In this document: one piece after another, positions 13,345 to 29,200 of the stretch
How the letters are laid out: each line of letters opens with the position of its first letter
Numbering within the stretch: position 1 is the stretch's first letter
Assembly: GCA_021613535.1 (NCBI GenBank)
Contig: CP075494.1
Location: 5,084,001-5,148,000 of the forward strand
Direction: 5' to 3'
Source of the DNA: Adineta vaga
Taxonomy: Eukaryota; Animalia; Rotifera
DNA length: 64,000 nucleotides
Notes under the pieces: generated by a model
What the model was told of the DNA's origin: nothing
Database searches by the model: none
What the model saw: the letters and a program-made list of their open reading frames with translations, nothing else
Made by a program: the position numbers and the translations under genes

Positions 13345-13546
13345 CTATTAAATCACTTTTCCCCTATGTCTATATTGTAACTAGACTATCACTTGAAATA
13401 CATATCCATTATTAGTAATAAAGTTTATTAAATTCAAACTCACTCACACCCATATTAGTATATATATATATTAGTTCAGAACTAAATTATGAAAATTTCT
13501 AATAGAAGAATACTAGTCTTCATCAACAAAATCAAAGTCTATAGAT

Positions 13547-16500
13547 TTATACAGAAGTTGTTTCACTTTCCAATGGTTCTGCTTGTGTTTTCAGCAATTT
13601 TGAAGCATGATGAGCCTAAGAAATGAACAGATCAGATGTACAATTAAAAATATATTCAAACAGTTTCACAATCGTTTTACCTGTAGTACTGAAAAACGTT
13701 TCAGGTCGTCAGCATCAGTCGAAACTCGACACGAATTGTCATTCTGACCGGCAAGTCTTTGAGCAAAACGACGACGGGTATATTGTGGTGTCGCTAAATC
13801 ACCTATATTTGGTGCGAAATACTTTGCAGCTACATCAACAATTGAATCTTCTATTGTATCCTCCATTTCGTCACTACTTGTAGGTGAACTTCTTCCGACT
13901 GCAGAACTCGATTTCTTCTCTGCGGCAATCTTATTTCCACGACGTGTACGTTGTTCTTGTGTTGATAGCTGAGTCTGTAAACTTTTTTCGATAGCTAGTT
14001 TCTTTCTTGGTTCAAAATAGGCAGCCAGAGCAAACTAAATCACAAAACAAAATATTCATCAAAAACTGTACTTTCATTTTTCAAATCGACTACTTTTATC
14101 AAATCAAATGGAAAAAACCAAATCAAGTTCCATATCCAAACTATTCCAGCCCATGTCCAACCACAACCTCCAACATTTGCAAACCCCCAATTGGCATAAA
14201 CAGCAATCAGTGTTGCAATAATCTGAGCGATTGTAAAAGAGAAAATTAACATAAATGATGGACGATCGAGGAAAAAGAATGTTTGAGAACGTGTTATAAA
14301 TATCAATGCATGGCTCATGATTGAAGATTGTAAATATATGATTGAGTTCAATATTGGATCATTCCATCCAGGATTAGGATCATCTGATGGACGATGTTGT
14401 ATTTTGTTGACACCGAATCTATCTTGAAAGAATGATGTTTTGATAATAATAATAAAGAATACAACTGTTGACAAAGATGAATATATTCCATAAACAGTTG
14501 CATGTGCAAACACATCTGACAATAGCCATTTGGTTGGATATGGAGATGGTTGCACACGATCTTTGGAAATTGTCATCATGGTAGCATTGTTGAGAAGAGT
14601 GAGAATAAGTAACTAGATAACAATAGTTTTCAAAACAATAAAACAAAAGGTTTTGATCGTTTTTTCTTACCATGAACGATGGAAAATCGAATTGAAAGGC
14701 AAAAAGAAGAATTGAATAACCAACTAATAGACGAACTGTCATCGCAGATGTATAAACAGAATAGTTTCTCATACATTGAAATATCTTTCTTGCACTAAGA
14801 ATGGCTTTTTAAAAGAAAAGAGAGAATAACATGTCTATTGTTTGAAACCAAAAAAAAAAGTGTTTGTTTACCTTCGATCACAACTGATAGACCAGGTTCA
14901 GTTAACACAATATCAGCTGCTGAACGTGCTGCATCTGATGCATCAGCAACAGCAATACCAACATTGGCTTTTTTAAGTGCTGGTGCATCATTCACACCAT
15001 CACCAGTCATGGCAATCACATGACCCATGTTTTGTAATCTCTCAACAATTTCATATTTATGTTCAGGATAGACACCAGAAAAACCATCAGCATGTAATAT
15101 CAAATCATCAATATCTTGATAACCTGAGTTTGAAGGTGGACCCTCTTTGAGAACTTTAGATGGAAACATATTATCACCTATGCCAAGACGACGTCCTGTT
15201 TCTTTTGCAATAGCTAACTGATCACCAGTGACCATTTTCACTTTGACACCTAATTCAAGAGCACGATCAATCGTTTCTTTGGTATCTGCACGCGGTGGAT
15301 CATAGATTGGTAGAAGACCAATCAATTTAAAACCATTTCCTTCTCCATCGACAATACCACTTGGAACATCTTCTATAGCAACAGCTAATGATCGTAAACC
15401 TCGTTCAGCAAATTCATCGACATCCTTCTCGAGTTGTTCGATCACTGCTGTTGTTTTATCTCTTGTACACAATTCCAATATTGATCGTGACATTCCTTTT
15501 GAGATACGATGCACTTTACCATCATTCAATGTTCTATAAGTTATTGCTGTTCGTTTCTCTGTTGGATTAAATCTTGAAAGAAGAAGAGGTAGAATTTGAT
15601 TTTTACATCTAATACAAATCCATTTAAACAACTTACGGTTTGAAATGTAATTCTTCAATACCTTCACGTATTTTTTTGATATCACCAAATGCTTCCGTTA
15701 CACATGTATCACTAAAACAAATCATCGAAAAGTTATTATATTTATTCTTATTCTGAAGATTACATGGCATCTTGATGTTGAGTGCGTGATGCAATAGCGG
15801 CATAATGAATAATATCATCCGGTTCAACATCGGCATATTGTTTTAAATTTTTCTTATCAATGACAAGTTTATTTAATGTTAATGTTCCTGTTTTATCTGA
15901 ACATAGAATCGTAACAGCTGCAAGTTCTTCGATAGCTGATACATGTGTGACTATTGCTTTTTGTTTCGATAATTGTCTTGCACCAAGAGCTAACGTTACC
16001 GTCATTACTGTTGCCATCGCTGTAGGAATACCACCAACTAGAGTTACAATTAAATTGTTCATACCACGTCGATATTCATAGCGGAAACCGACACTAAATT
16101 GATAAATAAAGAAATATTTTTCATATAGAAACTAAGATGACTCTCTCTTCATTAGACTACATACTACATAACTAATATTTGAGCAAGGAGAAAGACCACA
16201 ATCCAACAAATGCAAAACAGTCCAATACGACCCATCACTCTTTGGAGATTAGCTATATCGTTATTGTTACTAACTAAGCCAATCGTTCTTCCCATAAAAG
16301 AATATTTTCCAGTACCAATTACTATACGATAATGGAGAAACAATATCTCTCTTTGAACAATAAATAGAAACTTACTAATAGCTTCAGCTTCTCCTTGTTT
16401 ACAGATTGCGCCAGATAAGATTTCATCACCCACTTCTTTTTTCACAGGAAGTGATTCACCAGTTAGTGCTGCTTGATCCATCGTTAGTCGACCATATACA

Positions 16501-17243
16501 GCTAAACAATTGATAGTATTTTATATGCCTTATATTCTATGGAAAAGAGTCTTTCGTCTTACTTATGACTCGTCCATCAGCAGGTACAACATCACCTAAT
16601 TTCAAACTTATGATATCTCCTGGAACAAGATCAGATGCGTCAATCACTCTCCATTCGCCGTTACGTTTTGTTTTTGCTTCTGGTGCTAATGATGCTTGCA
16701 ATGCTTTAACAGAATTGCTAGCATTTCGTTCTTCGATAAAACTGACTGTTGCATTAACAAGCAAAAGTAGAACAATTCCAAGAAAGTCTTGCCAATTTGG
16801 AGGTTTGCCACCACCATTTGATAAAGCAATAGACACAATTGCTGCTATTTCCATCACCCAAGCTGATGGATTCCACATGAAGGAAAGAAACTTTAATACT
16901 GGATTTGTTTTCTTTTCTTCGATTTGATTTGGACCAAACTATAGTTACAGATTAGAAAACTAAAAGAAAGGCAAAGTAAGTTTACCTTTTCTCGTCGTTC
17001 ACTAACTTGATCATCAGTTAAACCATCATGTGACGCTCTTTGAATAAAAAGAATCATGTTTCAACACAATTTTGAAGAGAAAAAGAGTTTGGCAACATAC
17101 TCGAGTAGTTTAAACAGATCTTTCTCTCCCATTTTAGAAAACTCATATTTTTCGCCTTCATATAAATCTTCGACTGTGATAGTTCGTAAAGGATTTTCTG
17201 GAATATCTATTATTATATTTTTATCAGTAGATTTTTCTCCCAT
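13547..17243 (-). CDS. PMA1: P3A-type (fungal/plant plasma-membrane H+-ATPase-like) P-type ATPase, copy A; 12 exons: 17243-17101, 17037-16986, 16938-16563, 16501-16376, 16321-16165, 16093-15764, 15711-15637, 15572-14872, 14804-14671, 14612-14094, 14034-13681, 13615-13547
   Basis: Motifs [55 protein letters not shown] and TISKDRV. All introns are GT-AG. Alternative in-frame ATG at 17276. Confidence 0.92.
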
Positions 17244-18974
17244 TGTTTCACTTTTTTTCTTCGTTTTCTTCAACATATTTTAATCTAAAATAAAAAATAA
17301 TATAAATTTTCATCATTTAATCAAGTCAGATCTTTTCGATATAATCGAAAAAAGAGATCAAAAGTTCGAAAGAATATATTTGCACGAATAAATCATATTC
17401 TATTCAATATCTATGCTCTATCCGGAGAGATATCCCGTATACTCTTTTATTTGTCGTACTGACATATAAGTTCTTCTAGTGCAACTAATAAATTATGAAA
17501 GCCTTAAACAGTAAAACAACGTAGTTTATTTACAGATGATGTTCATTGACTTTTAAATCAAATATAGGTAAGTTCTATGAAAAACTTATTAGGAATGAAA
17601 GTAGGTAATAAAAACATGTTTTTCTCAAATCTATTTCATGCTCAACAGATTTATTGAGAACTTGCAAAATATATCATCCTTAAATTCAAGATAACAGAAA
17701 TAAAATAAGAAAAAGAGGTTAATCTTTATAAAAACAATCAAACGTTTCTAGCGAAGTATTTAAAGTGAATCAATAGAAAGAAAAGAATTTCAAGAAGAAT
17801 CTGAATTTTACAAAGTGGATATCTTATCTTACTTTTTGAGAGAATATATATGTATGTATCTGTGAAGATGATGTTTAAAACTATTCTATATCGACTAGTG
17901 ACCATGTTAAAAATCATGAATAGTTAGTTTGAAACATATTCTATTTCTCGAAGAATAGATTCTGATCATGATTCGTCTTTTAAGGACATATATGATCGAT
18001 TATATAATAAATGTTAAGAAAATTCTTTTGTTTTTCCTGCACTTAGTTACCATACATATATATATACTACTTGTACATACTATTTCTATATCTTTCTGAG
18101 GATCGCTATATAAATTCGTGCGAAATATCTAAATGATAATCATTGTTTTTCGTTCGGGTGTTTCACCGAAATACCGATATTGAACGAGGATTTAGGTCGT
18201 TAAGTAACATCACTATCATTTCATATAGCATAACAAAACAATGTTCGTTGAAATTTTGCTTGCAAAGAATACTACCAGCGATGATGTAATTGAACATTTG
18301 TAAAACCTAGAGAGCTTCTTCTTTACTGTCGCTATAATTGACAAAATTCTACCTACAAAAATGTTCTAGCGAATTTAATACTTACGAAAAAATGTACTGT
18401 ACCAAGATGTATATGACTATATTCTATTCTATCTCTTTCACGTTCTTCCTATCGGACACACATCATTGACTAGTTACGCTTTTGAATGCGGTCATATCTT
18501 TATCCTCTTTCCTATAAACTAAGTATTTTTCGTTCATATTCTTATTGTATGACATTATTTTTATTATATTTCTCTTTCTTTTTTCGTCCTTTCTCACCTC
18601 TTCCAATTGACCTGCTCATTCAAAGAGAAAAAAAATGAACTTTAAAGTGAAAGGTCGATTTTGGAAAGAATGAACAATGAATCCTTATGAATAAAGTTCG
18701 ATATTAAAGGCACTTTCTTATGTAGTATTATCTCCTTGTATAAACACTTTTGTGTGGGGAACAAGACGTTTAGTCAATAATTACAATCTTCAATGTTCGC
18801 AATAACATTCGATCACTTATTCGCTAAATTGGATTAATATTTTATTTATATACACATATATGTTAATCTTGCTACACTTACCTTTGAAGTTGAGGAGAAA
18901 AGTCTCAGTTCTTCAATTGTCAGCAAGAGAAAAAAAATATTACTTTTTATATCTGTATGGTGATTAGAACTAAA

Positions 18975-22581: not shown

Positions 22582-25500
22582 TTATACAGAAGTTGTTTCA
22601 CTTTCCAATCGTTCCGCTTGTGCTTTTAGCAATTTCGAAGCATGATGAGCCTAAGAAATGAATAGATCAGATGTATGATTGGGAGATTATGAAAACAGTT
22701 TCACATTAATTTTACCTGTACTAATGAAAAACGTTTCAAATCATCAGCATCAGTCGAAACTCGACACAAATTATCATTCTGACCAGCAAACATTCGAGCA
22801 AGATGATGACGCTGAGAGTGTGGTGTCGACAAGTGACGTGTATGTGGTGCGAAATATTTTGCAGCTGCATCAACAATTGAATCTTCTATTGTATCCACCA
22901 TTTCATCGCTACCTGCCGATGAGCGTCGGCCAACTGATAAACTTGATTCTTTTTCTGCAGCCATCATATTTCTACGACGTGTACGTTGTTCTTGTGTTGA
23001 TGGCTGTGGCTGTAAGGTTTCTTCAATAGCCATTTTTCTCCTTGGTTCAAAATAGGCAGCCAGAGCAAACTAAATTACAAAACAAAATATTCATCAAAAC
23101 TGCACTTTCATTTTTCAAATCGACTACTTTTATCAAATCAAATGGAAAAAACCAAATCAAGTTCCATATCCAAACTATTCCAGCCCATGTCCAACCACAA
23201 CCTCCAACATTTGCAAACCCCCAATTGGCATAAACAGCAATCAGTGTTGCAATAATCTGCGCAATTGTGAAAGAGAAAATTAACATAAATGATGGACGAT
23301 CGAGGAAAAAGAATGTTTGAGAACGTGTTATAAATATCAATGCATGGCTCATGATTGAAGATTGTAAATATATGATTGAGTTCAATATTGGATCATTCCA
23401 TCCAGGATTAGGATCATCTGATGGACGATGTTGTATTTTGTTGACACCGAATCTATCTTGAAAGAATGATGTTTTGATAATAATAATAAAGAATACAACT
23501 GTTGACAAAGATGAATATATTCCATAAACAGTTGCATGTGCAAACACATCTGACAATAGCCATTTGGTTGGATATGGAGATGGTTGCACACGATCTTTGG
23601 AAATTGTCATCATGGTAGCATTGTTGAGAAGAGTGAGAATAAGTAACTAGATAACAATAGTTTTCAAAACAATAAAACAAAAGGTTTTGATCGTTTTTTC
23701 TTACCATGAACGATGGAAAATCGAATTGAAAGGCAAAAAGAAGAATTGAATAACCAACTAATAGACGAACTGTCATCGCAGATGTATAAACAGAATAGTT
23801 TCTCATACATTGGAATATCTTTCTTGCACTAAGAATGGCTTTTTAAAAGAAAAGAGAGAATAACATGTCTATTGTTTGAAACCAAAGAAAAAGTGTTTGT
23901 TTACCTTCGATCACAACTGATAAACCAGGTTCAGTTAACACAATATCAGCTGCTGAACGTGCTGCATCTGATGCATCAGCAACAGCAATACCAACATTGG
24001 CTTTTTTAAGTGCTGGTGCATCATTCACACCATCACCAGTCATGGCAATCACATGACCCATGTTTTGTAATCTCTCAACAATTTCATATTTATGTTCAGG
24101 ATAGACACCAGAAAAACCATCAGCATGTAATATCAAATCATCAATATCTTGATAACCTGAGTTTGAAGGTGGACCCTCTTTGAGAACTTTAGATGGAAAC
24201 ATATTATCACCTATGCCAAGACGACGTCCTGTTTCTTTTGCAATAGCTAACTGATCACCAGTGACCATTTTCACTTTGACACCTAATTCAAGAGCACGAT
24301 CAATCGTTTCTTTGGTATCTGCACGTGGTGGATCATAGATTGGTAACAGACCAATTAGTTTAAAACCATTTCCTTCTCCATCGACAATACCACTTGGAAC
24401 ATCTTCTATAGCAACAGCTAATGATCGTAAACCTCGTTCAGCAAATTCATCAACATCCTTCTCGAGTTGTTCGATCACTTGTGTTGTTTTATCTCTTGTA
24501 CACAATTCCAATATTGATCGTGACATTCCTTTTGAGATACGATGTACTTTACCATCATTCAATGTTCTATAAGTTATTGCTGTTCGTTTCTCTGTTGGAT
24601 TAAATCTTGAAAGAAGAAGAGGTAGAATTTGATTTTTACATCTAATACAAATCCATTTAAACAACTTACGGTTTGAAATGTAATTCTTCAATACCTTCAC
24701 GTATTTTTTTGATATCACCAAATGCTTCCGTTATACATGTATCACTAAAACAAATCATCGAAAAGTTATTATATTTATTCTTATTCTGAAGATTACATGG
24801 CATCTTGATGTTGAGTGCGTGATGCAATAGCGGCATAATGAATAATATCATCCGGTTCAACATCGGCATATTGTTTTAAATTTTTCTTATCAATGACAAG
24901 TTTATTCAATGTTAATGTTCCTGTTTTATCTGAACATAGAATCGTAACAGCTGCAAGTTCTTCGATAGCTGATACATGTGCAACTATAGCTTTTTGTTTT
25001 GATAATTGTCGTGCACCAAGAGCTAGCATTACTGTCAGTACTGTTGGCATTGCTGTCGGAACACCACCAACTAGAGTTACAATTAAATTGTTCATACCAC
25101 GTCGATATTCATAGCGAAAACCAGCACTAAATAAACAAAGATATGTTTGAATTTGTAATGGAGTTTAAGATGACTCTCTCTTCATTAGACTACATACTAC
25201 ATAACCAATATCTGAGCAAGGAGAAAGACCACAATCCAACAAATGCAAAATAGTCCAATACGACCCATCACTCTTTGGAGATGAGCGGTACCATCATGGT
25301 TACCAAGTAAACCAATTGTTCTTCCCATAAATGAATATTTTCCAGTACCAATTACTATGCGTTTAAAAAAAAGAATTCTCTCTTGAGAAGCTTGATATAT
25401 TGAAACTTACCAATAACTTCAGCTTCTCCTTGTTTACAGATTGCGCCAGATAAGATTTCATCACCCACTTCTTTTTTCACAGGAAGTGATTCACCAGTTA

Positions 25501-26279
25501 ATGCTGCTTGATCCATCGTTAGTCGACCATATACAGCTAAACAATTGAGAATATTTTATATGCCTTATATTCTATGGAAAAGAGTCTTCTGTCCTTACTT
25601 ATAACTCGTCCATCGGCAGGTACAACATCGCCTAATTTCAGACTTATGATATCTCCTGGAACAAGATCAGATGCTTCAATCACTCTCCATTCGCCGTTAC
25701 GTTTAGTTTTTGCTTCTGGTGCTAATGATGCTTGTAGTACTTTAACAGAATTGCCGGCATTTCTTTCTTCGATAAAACTGATTGTTGAATTAACAAATAG
25801 AAGCAGAATAATTCCAAGGAAGTCTTGCCAATTTGGAGGTTTGCCACCACCATTTGATAAAGCAATAGACACAATTGCTGCTATTTCCATCACCCAAGAT
25901 AATGGATTCCACATGAAAGAAAAGAACTTCAATACTGGATTTGTTTTCTTTTCTTCGATTTGATTTCGACCAAACTATAGTTACAGATTAGAAAACTAAA
26001 AGAAAGGCAAAGTAAGTTTACCTTTTCTCGTCGTTCACTAACTTGATCATCAGTTAAACCATCATGTGACGCTCTTTGAATAAAAAGAATCATGTTTCAA
26101 CACAATTTTGAAGAGAAAAAGAGTTTGGCAACATACTCGAGTAGTTTAAACAGATCTTTCTCTCCCATTTTAGAAAACTCATATTTTTCGCCTTCATATA
26201 AATCTTCGACTGTGATAGTTCGTAAAGGATTTTCTGGAATATCTATTATTATATTTTTATCAATAGATTTTTCTTCCAT
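22582..26279 (-). CDS. PMA1: P3A-type plasma-membrane H+-ATPase-like P-type ATPase, copy B (12 exons, same structure as copy A)
   Basis: Same motifs and splice sites as copy A; [36 protein letters not shown]; ends ESETTSV*. Confidence 0.92.
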
Positions 26280-29200
26280 TGTTTCACTTTTTTTCTTCGT
26301 TTGTTCCAATGTTTTTTGTACCTAAAATAACAAAGAATATAAAATGTCTTTCAAGGATATATGATCGATTATATATTGATTATTACGAAGGCTTTTGCTT
26401 TTCCTGTACTCTCTCGCGTTTTTTTTCTATCGTAGTCTGACAATCACAATAAATATAGTTGGAATATTGAAAGGTTAATCATAGTTTTTTTGTTCGAGAT
26501 TCTCATCGTTTTATATAACACCTAAATAATCAATCAAAACTTATATACACACATGATTAGATAGTTACAATTGTATACGGTTCTATTTTCAGTTTCTCTC
26601 TCCTTTAAACTAACTGCTTTCTTACATATTCTCGTAGTGTGTAATTACTTTTATTATATCTCATTGACTCTCGCGATTGATCTGAGTGACACAAGGAAAA
26701 AAAACTGAACCTAAAAATATTTAGTTGTCTTTTTGTGCTTACCTTCCTTTCTACGTGATCAAAATGTTATAAATAAGAAATGCGTTTATCATATAAATGA
26801 CAAGGTGCTTGCAGTAAAGAATCGAAATGAATCAATGTGCAGCAGTGACGATAGGTATTTTAAGTGAAGGATATATATACTGTACAAAACTGTCTAATTA
26901 TGCAGTATTTTATCTTTTGCTATAAATAGATTGTCTATTCATTTTTCAGGACATTTTCGTTCGAAATATTCTAGTTTCGATAATATTGTCCTAATCGTAC
27001 ATTCATTGTAAGACTCAATGAACCGCATTCTTACACAATTTTAAAAGCTGAAAAGCCATTAGGATATGAGGAAATTGGCTCAACAGAATATAAATTATTA
27101 ACAAAGGATGGTAGAAATTCCACTTTTAAAAAGAGATGCATTGATAAGAAAAATGAATTGAATAAGCCGAAAAATAATGAATACTGTTCATAGAGAATTT
27201 TTCAATTTATATTTGTTATGAGTTAATCTTTATTTTTGATCTTAAGTGCAGTTCAAAATTGTATTATAATACCATATACACGCATCTCACAAAGCCTAGA
27301 TTATCAATAGAGCAGATTCGAATGATATGCACTCGTTGTACACCTTGTTAATTAATGATAATATCTTTCTTTTTCGTTCTTTCGTTTATAATATAACGAT
27401 ATATATTTACATACTCATTTTTGGCCTTCAAGTTCAACAGACATTTGTTCGCTTAGGACAAATTTGAAAGATGACTCATAATTAACATCAGTATTGTACA
27501 ATTCAGTTTACAACTTCAATGGCAGGTTTGATAGACTCGTCTATCTTTTATTATGGGGTGTTTAAAGTAAAGATACAGTGAATGTCATATTCTACCTTTT
27601 AAAAAAGATCTGTACAAGTCATTCTATGTAATTCTTTAGTTAACAAGTAATTTAGGAGTAAAGAGTCAGCTTATATTCATCGAATCGCCCATAAGCCATT
27701 GTTTAACAAATGCGAGGTGTGGTTATTTGTTCCGAATACGTTTTTGGTGGGATATACAAATCAAAAAGGATGATGAATAAAAAACGTAACGTATAGGTTT
27801 GCACTCAAAGTGTATAACGAATAGAATGATTGCAAGAGTGTAAACCTGTTCTCAAAGAAAGGAAAAAAATATTTTTATTTTGAAATTTCATTCTCTTCAT
27901 TATTGAAGACATCATCACAATCTCGACTTAACCAAAGTTACTTTATAATCGTAACAAGTTCTATTTTAAAAATAAATTACTTTAATTAATAAAGTTTCAT
28001 AATTCAAAACAGTTCTGATAGAAAATTCTTAAATGAATATCCAACGACTGAATTATAAATTATTGTCTGCTCGTATCTGTACCATATCTTTCGATATAAT
28101 TTTCAAAATAAAACGTTTCATTACGTTTCGAAATGCTCTTGATATACAAATAAAGATTAAAAAAATCTTGAACCAACGGGTAGATGATGAATAAAATCAA
28201 GAATAGAAAATATAAATTTATTAATTATTTGTTCTAAATCTGTTTTCCTATTCATTTTTCATTGTTGTCATGTGAACATAATAAATATTGAGAAAAATAC
28301 TAAATAATGTAATCATTGTTATAGAAAACAATGATCTCATAACTATCAATGAATAAGGCACAAAATCGCGATAGATTGATGATTGGCCATAATAACATGG
28401 GTAATACGATGAATACACTTCCATAAGATTAAGTCTGATTAATGTGTATGAGTAGAAAAGATGAACCAAATGAAACTATTGACACTCTCAAGATGGACTA
28501 ATTGTGAATAAGTATTCATTCTTCCATGAGATAAGTAAAAAGCAACGAATAGAAATATACCGACTTTATTATCCTACAGCTTTTTTAATTTTTCGAGATG
28601 AAAATTTAAATGCGATACATAAAAGAACTATTTTCTCAAGCACATTGCTAGCCTCGAATTGTGCCACAGTAATACTCAAATGATTATCATTATTAAAATT
28701 TCCGACACTTATTAATTGCCAAACGTAAGTGAACATGTTTGTTTTACGATACATTAATTTAGAAAATTCCTAGAGTCTGTGAAGAAGAAATTACATACTA
28801 TTCAGCCTTTTTGATGTGAAATAGATTATGAATATACCAAGAACTATCAATATAAGTATGAATATCGGAAGTAGACAGATAGAAATGGAATCGAAAGATA
28901 AAAATGCAGTCTTGAAATTTTAAATCATTCATTCACTGAGACGATTACAAGACTTTTGAAAAAATTTAAACATAATTTTAATTAAAGTGTTTCCTCTTGG
29001 TTTTTCCGAATCAAATACAGAGCTTCATGCGACATTTAACGAGGAGTTTTTCAGTATTATTTATTATGGTCATGGTATAGGAGAAAATATGTATGTTTAG
29101 AGACATCCTGTTTTCATAGAGTCTTCTAAACAGCATAGTTCTCAGATTGTATTTTGATTAGGATAAATGATTCTGATGTACAATCTATTTGAGTCTCAAC

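Follow-up and report, generated by a model that had tools for sequence, protein, structure and literature searches.

The stretch of DNA analysed here, referred to as the window, comprises 64,000 nucleotides of the bdelloid rotifer Adineta vaga (GenBank assembly GCA_021613535.1, contig CP075494.1, positions 5,084,001 to 5,148,000 of the forward strand). It contains a tandem pair of paralogous genes, designated copy A and copy B, which encode P-type ATPases of the P3A type, the type of the proton pumps AHA2 of Arabidopsis and Pma1 of fungi. In both predicted proteins, the helix-6 aspartate that acts as proton acceptor (Asp684 of AHA2, Asp730 of Pma1) is replaced by asparagine. Comparative analyses revealed that this replacement is shared by a clade of rotifer genes under purifying selection, whose products may be ATP-driven pumps with a proton site rebuilt for a different bound species.

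Joining the exons by script showed that both copies consist of 12 exons and 1022 codons closed by a TAA stop, with unbroken frames and 11 introns each, all of the GT..AG type and 47-71 nt long, in agreement with the sequence-only reading of this DNA, which had described both open reading frames as intact. The two proteins differ at 70 of the 1022 residues, and exon 10 opens with the same 20-residue peptide at 14612 in copy A and at 23646 in copy B. In both copies, exon 9 closes with FDFPSFM and is followed by GTAAGA, and the intron before exon 10 is 58 nt long with CTAG at its 3' end; the dash that the sequence-only reading had placed in "FM-LL" marks this splice site and corresponds to no gap relative to AHA2. 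At the start of the coding region (26277-26312), copy B has ACA in place of the first ATG of copy A, and its first in-frame ATG is codon 12 (26279-26277). Translation of copy B therefore probably starts at this methionine, which is shared by the two copies and may be the true start of copy A as well.

Spliced contigs from four public runs belonging to three studies, aligned to positions 13500-17300, were found to cover both copies. These contigs skip eleven intervals bordered by CT..AC on the plus strand, that is, GT..AG on the gene strand, and their joints match the gene models. The contigs of runs X6 and X5 showed zero differences from copy A, while the 3.1-kb contigs of runs X1 and X2 differed from copy A at exactly the places and in exactly the numbers expected of copy B, with 64 letters in the last large exon (where copy B has 82% identity over 355 nt) and 3 in exon 10. 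The asparagine codon was unaltered in the spliced transcripts. The RNA nature of these four runs was guessed from the run records; a source other than transcripts is unlikely, because the contigs lack the introns and no intron-less P3A copy exists among the five loci of the genome. Both copies are thus transcribed and correctly spliced.

Table 1. Features of the two P3A-type ATPase genes and blocks of identity between them (positions within the window; residue numbers of AHA2 unless stated otherwise).
Feature	Position	Strand	Remark
Copy A, P3A-type ATPase gene, coding sequence including stop	13547-17276	minus	joints from spliced contigs of runs X6 and X5; frame and splice sites checked
Copy A, exons 1-6	17101-17276, 16986-17037, 16563-16938, 16376-16501, 16165-16321, 15764-16093	minus
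Copy A, exons 7-12	15637-15711, 14872-15572, 14671-14804, 14094-14612, 13680-14034, 13547-13614	minus
Copy A, exon 10 (helix 6 to helix 10)	14094-14612	minus	helix 6 TLLNNAT, AILNDGT in Asp-bearing homologs
Copy A, codon at Asp684	14586-14588	minus	AAT, Asn718 of the model; phmmer alignment
Copy A, helix-5 Arg (R655)	14731-14733	minus	CGT, Arg689 of the model; retained
Copy A, helix-4 core	16012-16023	minus	P-T-A-M-A; Thr for Ile287; Ala (GCA, 16014-16012) for P290, SERCA P312
Copy A, helix-2 Asn (N106)	16753-16755	minus	AAT, Asn138 of the model; retained
Copy A, outer loop (D92)	16795-16797	minus	AAT; PPDWQD to PPNWQD
Copy B, tandem paralog	22582-26312	minus	same 12-exon structure; exons mapped by blastn; frame intact
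Copy B, exon 10	23128-23646	minus	protein same as in copy A; 3 nt differ
Copy B, codon at Asp684	23620-23622	minus	AAT
Copy B, helix-5 Arg (R655)	23765-23767	minus	CGT; retained
Copy B, helix-4 core	25045-25056	minus	P-T-A-M-P; Thr for Ile287; second proline present (CCA, 25047-25045)
Copy B, helix-2 Asn (N106)	25789-25791	minus	AAT; retained
Copy B, outer loop (D92)	25831-25833	minus	AAT; PPDWQD to PPNWQD
Identity block, copy A/copy B	13629-14078		78-89%
Identity block, copy A/copy B	14079-15878		98-100%, introns included; holds helices 5 and 6 (exons 6-10)
Identity block, copy A/copy B	15879-16925		84-95%
Identity block, copy A/copy B	16926-17225		99-100%

The change of LNDGT to LNNAT in helix 6 of both copies, first noticed in the sequence-only reading, was confirmed by alignment. 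A phmmer search of all PDB sequences with exon 10 retrieved Arabidopsis AHA2 as the sole match (5KSD, E = 6e-48); the motif aligns with LIIAILNDGT of AHA2 without gaps, and the second asparagine of L-N-N-A-T falls on residue 673 of the 5ksd chain, which is Asp684. AHA2 was also the best PDB match of every exon tested (E values from 5e-7 to 1e-50), the PDB searches having been made exon by exon, and the frame check, the alignments and the substitution rates being based on the script-joined coding sequences. Both copies, like the orthologs, have all of the motifs TGES, DKTGT, DPPR/DPLR, TGDQ and GDGVND; the clade carries all catalytic motifs of AHA2 and Pma1 together with the helix-2 asparagine and, in Adineta, the helix-5 arginine. 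The retention in the window of DKTGT, TGES, GDGVND, the helix-2 asparagine and the helix-5 arginine, like the change of PPDWQD to PPNWQD in the outer loop, had been read correctly from the letters. In helix 4, GGIPTAM(A/P)TV aligns to GGIPIAMPTV of AHA2, and a gapless match to SERCA places Thr320 at Glu309 and residue 323 (Ala or Pro) at Pro312. The copies, which the sequence-only reading had treated alike, differ here, with AMATV in copy A versus AMPTV in copy B; copy B and most orthologs have the two prolines of P-x-x-x-P (SERCA P308 and P312), of which the second is replaced by Ala in copy A and by Ser in the A. ricciae protein P0400.

By profile, full-length orthologs scored 1009-1030 bits on the P3A H+-ATPase model TIGR01647 of NCBIfam (cut-off 615.5), and TIGR01494 was matched too. 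The clade thus belongs to the P-type ATPase superfamily and, by descent, to the P3A group, and all of its members lack the helix-6 proton-acceptor aspartate. As a consequence, annotation by this equivalog profile, with scores above 1000 bits, says "proton-efflux ATPase" despite the missing defining residue.

Besides the tandem pair, the same genome carries three P3A loci (on C1, C4 and C2); identity in exon 10 is 57-62%, and AILNDGT is read at each of the three. The C2 paralog (C2:11239011-11239490) is the most divergent, with 57% identity and one in-frame TGA in the match that may be an intron or a break. Among 119 full-length rotifer and fungal homologs, 117 carry [LI]NDGT. When exon 10 was searched against 5.8 billion proteins, fragments of 68-83% identity with the common signature WLL(S/T)DVF were returned, and their helix-6 motif was read on the respective contigs upstream of the called open reading frames. 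This motif is LLNNAT in a Rotaria sordida contig and in the environmental lineage L010-L012, LFNNTT in two further lineages (L009 and L013-L016), FFNNTA in the lineage L019-L021, and FLNDGT in the lineage L017/L018, a sister that keeps the aspartate. Three full-length annotated proteins were recovered by profile search, namely P0398 of R. sordida (LLNNVT) and P0399 and P0400 of A. ricciae (LLNNGT and LLNNAT). Asparagine was therefore found in every clade member, comprising R. sordida, the two A. ricciae proteins and five metagenomic lineages, with lineages 68-84% identical and the codon being AAT in eight loci and AAC in one. The alignment of orthologs called for by the sequence-only reading thus shows that the asparagine is fixed, also in named species of two bdelloid families, and, set against the 117 of 119 homologs with aspartate, that it is no chance feature.

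In a careful tree of residues 600-882, the Asn clade was supported at 100/98. Its union with L017/L018 has a stem 0.32 substitutions per site long and a support of 100/100; this union stands beside an Asp-type protein of A. steineri inside the rotifer family, and the nearest outsiders of the rotifer family are H+-ATPases of Mucoromycota and Zoopagomycota. A larger, quick tree from which the columns of the helix-6 motif were excluded gave the same topology (support 93 and 100), and in the trees the canonical paralogs of the genome adjoin A. ricciae and A. steineri proteins. From this topology, a single change from Asp to Asn took place after the split of L017/L018 and before that of Adineta and Rotaria. 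The phylogeny thus indicates that the tandem genes form a bdelloid-specific subfamily of the fungal-type P3A genes carried by rotifers. With the canonical paralogs (C1, C4, C2, A. steineri P0257 and R. sordida P0264) and the relatives in Mucoromycota and Zoopagomycota, the clade shares membership of one acquired family, 61-67% identity and a C-terminal tail with DLKRFS and HHASKLLK; in contrast to the clade as a whole, all of these relatives keep AILNDGT, PIAMP in helix 4 and the helix-5 arginine.

The tail ends in T-x-V in most proteins of the rotifer P3A family (ETTSV, QTTSV, QTTHV, QATSV or ETTPV; window positions 13550-13564 and 22585-22599, P0398, P0399, L017 and L019), and the copy A protein ends in ETTSV. 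Only some canonical members have this ending, which is present in R. sordida P0264, while A. steineri P0257 ends otherwise. We take the terminal T-x-V to have the form of a class I PDZ-binding ligand; it also recalls the penultimate-threonine 14-3-3 site (YTV) of plant pumps.

Nonsynonymous to synonymous rate ratios (dN/dS), calculated by the Nei-Gojobori method on codon alignments anchored exon by exon on copy A, ranged within the clade from 0.09 to 0.24 in the conserved core and from 0.08 to 0.32 in the membrane part, compared with 0.16 for the canonical C1/C4 pair and 0.17 for copy A versus copy B; faster evolution is seen in the tail that follows helix 10 (0.3-0.8). Synonymous divergence between clade lineages extends from 0.3 to above 1, values above 1 being saturated, and the asparagine has consequently outlasted many chances of reversion by a single transition. 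The clade is under purifying selection in several rotifer lineages. The sequence-only reading had proposed the dN/dS estimate and an expression check, and had named Asp-bearing orthologs and silent genes as grounds for abandoning its interpretation; the orthologs carry Asn rather than Asp, and spliced transcripts of both copies exist.

To list the replacements that accompany the loss of Asp684, ten Asp-bearing homologs served as reference, three of them paralogs from the same genome and seven full-length representatives of plant, fungal or unnamed origin; a position was listed when its conservation among these ten reached at least 85% and it was replaced in at least 80% of the clade. About two dozen were found, including, in AHA2 numbering, A80S in helix 1, D92N/H in the outer loop, Glu to Gln in helix 3, L280T/A, I285V, I287T and S294T in helix 4, R641C and F660Y in helix 5, A680T, D684N and G685A/T in helix 6 (the last being Val in some and replaced in most members), L720S in helix 7, and Val to Ser/Thr in helix 8. 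Relative to AHA2 and Pma1, the clade is distinguished by Asn at Asp684/Asp730, Thr at Ile287 and Ala680, Tyr at Phe660, neutralisation of the helix-3 Glu and of Asp92 in the outer loop, and its occurrence in an animal genome, the window genes having 11 short introns. Thr287, Thr680 and Asn684 are invariant within the clade. In the sister L017/L018, Arg641, Ala680, Asp684 and Gly685 are ancestral and some of the other clade changes are already present.

In structural comparisons, Asp684 of AHA2 superposes on Asp800 of SERCA and Arg655 on Glu771 (PMC5387105). Based on this superposition, the gapless helix-4 match and a four-residue helical offset, the SERCA ligand positions E309, E771, N796, T799 and D800 were assigned, respectively, to Thr, Arg/His/Asn, Thr, Asn and Asn in the clade, and to Ile, Arg, Ala, Asn and Asp in canonical P3A pumps. 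The clade thus has polar side chains at all five positions of helices 4-6 that provide side-chain ligands of Ca2+ in SERCA. In helix 5, the window copies and the A. ricciae proteins have Arg (CGT), R. sordida has His and five environmental lineages have Asn (AAT), so that the retention of the arginine claimed by the sequence-only reading holds for Adineta and fails beyond it; at codon level these states would be linked in two steps, from CGT to CAT to AAT. A new membrane-helix carboxylate that could replace the aspartate was found neither in the window copies nor in the R. sordida and A. ricciae proteins; only a subgroup of four loci (L013, L014, L019 and L021) has one, a Glu two residues past the helix-4 proline (PTEMP).

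The alternation of high and low identity along the two copies (Table 1) points to gene conversion, and 14079-15878 is probably a conversion tract between old duplicates. As the tract covers the Asp684 codon, the sequence-only reading was right that both copies carry Asn, but the two codons of the window are not independent and count as one piece of evidence.

Taken together, the phosphorylation and dephosphorylation machinery is intact, the proton carboxylate is gone, two more acidic residues on the membrane and outer side are neutralised, the pocket has acquired hydroxyl and amide groups, and all of this has been kept by selection in transcribed genes. We favour, with a probability of roughly 45%, the reading that the clade encodes an ATP-driven pump in which the former proton site has been remodelled to bind another species, and ordinary proton pumping is probably no longer performed by this pump. 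On the stem of the subfamily, Asp684 changed to Asn alongside the polar gains at Ile287, Ala680 (both to Thr) and Phe660 (to Tyr); the ATP-driven E1/E2 cycle is presumably retained. The central carboxylate, which is protonated and then deprotonated via the helix-5 arginine, would have given way to a neutral pocket with a lining of hydroxyl and amide groups, and the transported species would have changed, for example to a monovalent cation or to hydronium held on neutral oxygens, rather than classical protons. Later steps would have differed between lineages, with Arg kept in Adineta, His in Rotaria and Asn elsewhere in helix 5, and with the new helix-4 Glu in one subgroup.

The sequence-only reading had proposed either a repurposed P3A pump or an uncoupled or regulatory role. 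Of these, repurposing is favoured by the clustering of the replacements, as far as function can be inferred from it. Clade-wide replacement affected 9 of 30 eligible positions in helices 4-6 and 15 of 215 elsewhere (odds ratio 5.7, Fisher p = 7e-4), an enrichment that favours a rebuilt transport site and is indicative only, since the helix limits were set after the list had been seen.

Several further points weigh against a rebuilt site. The window proteins keep the helix-5 arginine without its carboxylate partner, which disfavours cation binding, and it is chiefly this unpaired residue, awkward for a cation site in the Adineta proteins, that calls for caution. The variation of the site among orthologs (Arg, His or Asn in helix 5; Ala or Glu in helix 4) could equally reflect a disused site drifting within structural limits. 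The ortholog sequences, moreover, are tblastn-anchored exon alignments rather than verified gene models, and most of them come from metagenome contigs for which the organism is inferred only.

More specifically, and as a distinctly tentative proposal, a horizontally acquired fungal proton pump might have given rise inside the bdelloids to the first natural P3A-derived non-proton pump, which would move Na+, K+ or hydronium on neutral oxygens and whose site would still be in the course of stepwise rebuilding, with helix 5 passing from Arg through His to Asn and a Glu being added in helix 4. In Adineta, judged from an unpaired arginine in a membrane core that offers no carboxylate, an anion would be a possible substrate too. 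An analogy is offered by the light-driven Na+ and Cl- pumping rhodopsins, which derive from proton pumps and in which the primary acceptor Asp became Asn or Thr with a change of specificity away from H+; belonging to an unrelated protein family with another energy source, they provide a lead and no evidence.

That the proteins still pump protons or hydronium by another route, through water or hydronium in a polar cavity or through the PTEMP glutamate, with the asparagine altering only pKa and coupling, seems unlikely, though several features are compatible with it. The helix-2 Asn is retained together with the helix-5 tyrosines, as is the arginine in Adineta, the C-terminal regulatory tail is shared with the canonical paralogs, the helix-4 Glu is present in the four PTEMP loci, and P3A pumps have been proposed to bind hydronium where helix 4 is unwound (PMC10654040). 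In AHA2, however, transport was kept only by D684E, and the remaining Asp684 mutants hydrolyse ATP without pumping and build up in E1P (PMC5387105); such a route would also have to operate with the helix-3 Glu and the outer-loop Asp neutralised as well, and in the window copies, Rotaria and the A. ricciae proteins with no new carboxylate in a membrane helix.

A role as a non-transporting or uncoupled ATPase, acting as a regulator, an oligomer partner of canonical pumps or a sensor, with the membrane domain serving for folding and assembly only, is somewhat more doubtful still. P3A pumps form hexamers, so that mixed oligomers with canonical pumps are conceivable, and in R. sordida an Asp-type paralog apparently shares a contig with the Asn-type gene; the site residues differ among lineages, and the second helix-4 proline is gone in copy A and in P0400. 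In addition, the identical substitution made in the laboratory, AHA2 D684N, yields an ATPase that is uncoupled and insensitive to vanadate and piles up in the E1P state (PMC5387105). This mutant carries a single change in a proton-pump background, whereas the change in the clade is natural, ancient and selected and comes with the other clade-wide replacements. Against such a role, an enzyme that wastes ATP is unlikely to be retained at dN/dS of about 0.1-0.2 in several lineages. The replacements also run in one direction, with hydroxyl or amide side chains taking the place of hydrophobic ones at canonical ligand positions, and the three residues of helices 4 and 6 named above are invariant, which looks more like the making of a new site than the abandonment of the old.

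A decaying gene pair, or a recent mutation copied between the tandem copies by gene conversion, is highly improbable: the copies are identical around the codon, within the conversion tract, and copy A has further changes at conserved positions (NPLSW to NPSAW, NAGN to NASN and AMPTV to AMATV), but the presence of Asn in every ortholog examined rules out a recent mutation spread by conversion, and the spliced transcripts, the intact 1022-codon frames and the low dN/dS of the pair rule out a silent gene or pseudogene.

Reviews present Asp684 as a residue that all P3A H+-ATPases conserve and that carries the proton (PMC3355532; PMC10654040), and Arg655 is thought to drive deprotonation and to serve as a built-in counter-ion (PMC5387105; PMC10654040; PMC3355532). 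Loss of Arg655 is known from functional chlorophyte and protist P3A pumps (PMC3355532), and several clade members likewise lack this arginine; those pumps, unlike the clade, keep Asp684. In the literature searched, neither a bdelloid P3A pump nor a natural replacement of Asp684 in a conserved clade was found, and a paper on H+-ATPase-like putative Na+ pumps of Dunaliella makes no mention of these residues. Loss of the helix-5 arginine is thus known, and loss of the aspartate in a conserved P3A clade appears to be new as far as this literature goes. A clade that lacks Asp684 and yet retains a selected ATPase machinery represents a natural experiment in how the ion of a P-type pump is exchanged or lost, with graded intermediates in the Asp-keeping sister, in the Arg, His or Asn of helix 5, and in the presence or absence of the helix-4 Glu and of the second helix-4 proline. 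It is also relevant to the fate of foreign genes in animals after acquisition.

Regarding the history of the pair, 14 core residues are derived in each copy, those of copy A including NPLSW to NPSAW in helix 1, VNSTI to VNATV by the helix-2 asparagine and AMPTVL to AMATVM in helix 4, besides NAGN to NASN. At sites where the two copies differ, A. ricciae P0400 has seven copy A states and P0399 has the copy B states, and the reverse pattern was never seen; in a tree of residues 60-345, copy A joined copy B (99/100). These data suggest that either the duplication predates the two Adineta species and was followed by partial homogenisation, or the same changes arose twice, and under both histories the oddities of copy A look selected rather than accidental. 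The possibility that the helix-4 Pro-to-Ala change of copy A is a random lesion is weakened by the Ser of P0400 at this position and by the seven shared states, although the tree joins the two copies.

In R. sordida, two contigs of about 36 kb from two assemblies (L023 and L024) apparently carry the Asn-type P0398 and the Asp-type P0264 together, on the same strand, about 16-20 kb apart and with few genes between them, and the same genes of 459 and 83 amino acids occur at both loci. This linkage points to a local duplication as the likely origin of the Asn type. In the environmental contigs L010, L013 and L019, an NHL-repeat gene adjoins the Asn-type ATPase gene, which may represent conserved synteny. 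The other P3A-like matches without the aspartate were lone sequences, namely Brassica and Spinacia fragments, a partial Papaver protein and one protein of Coemansia reversa, none of them shown to belong to a conserved clade. The Coemansia protein (P0108, annotated as "plasma membrane ATPase 1", 820 amino acids) reads SINVIL where others have ILNDGT, and it may be another natural proton pump that has lost its acceptor.

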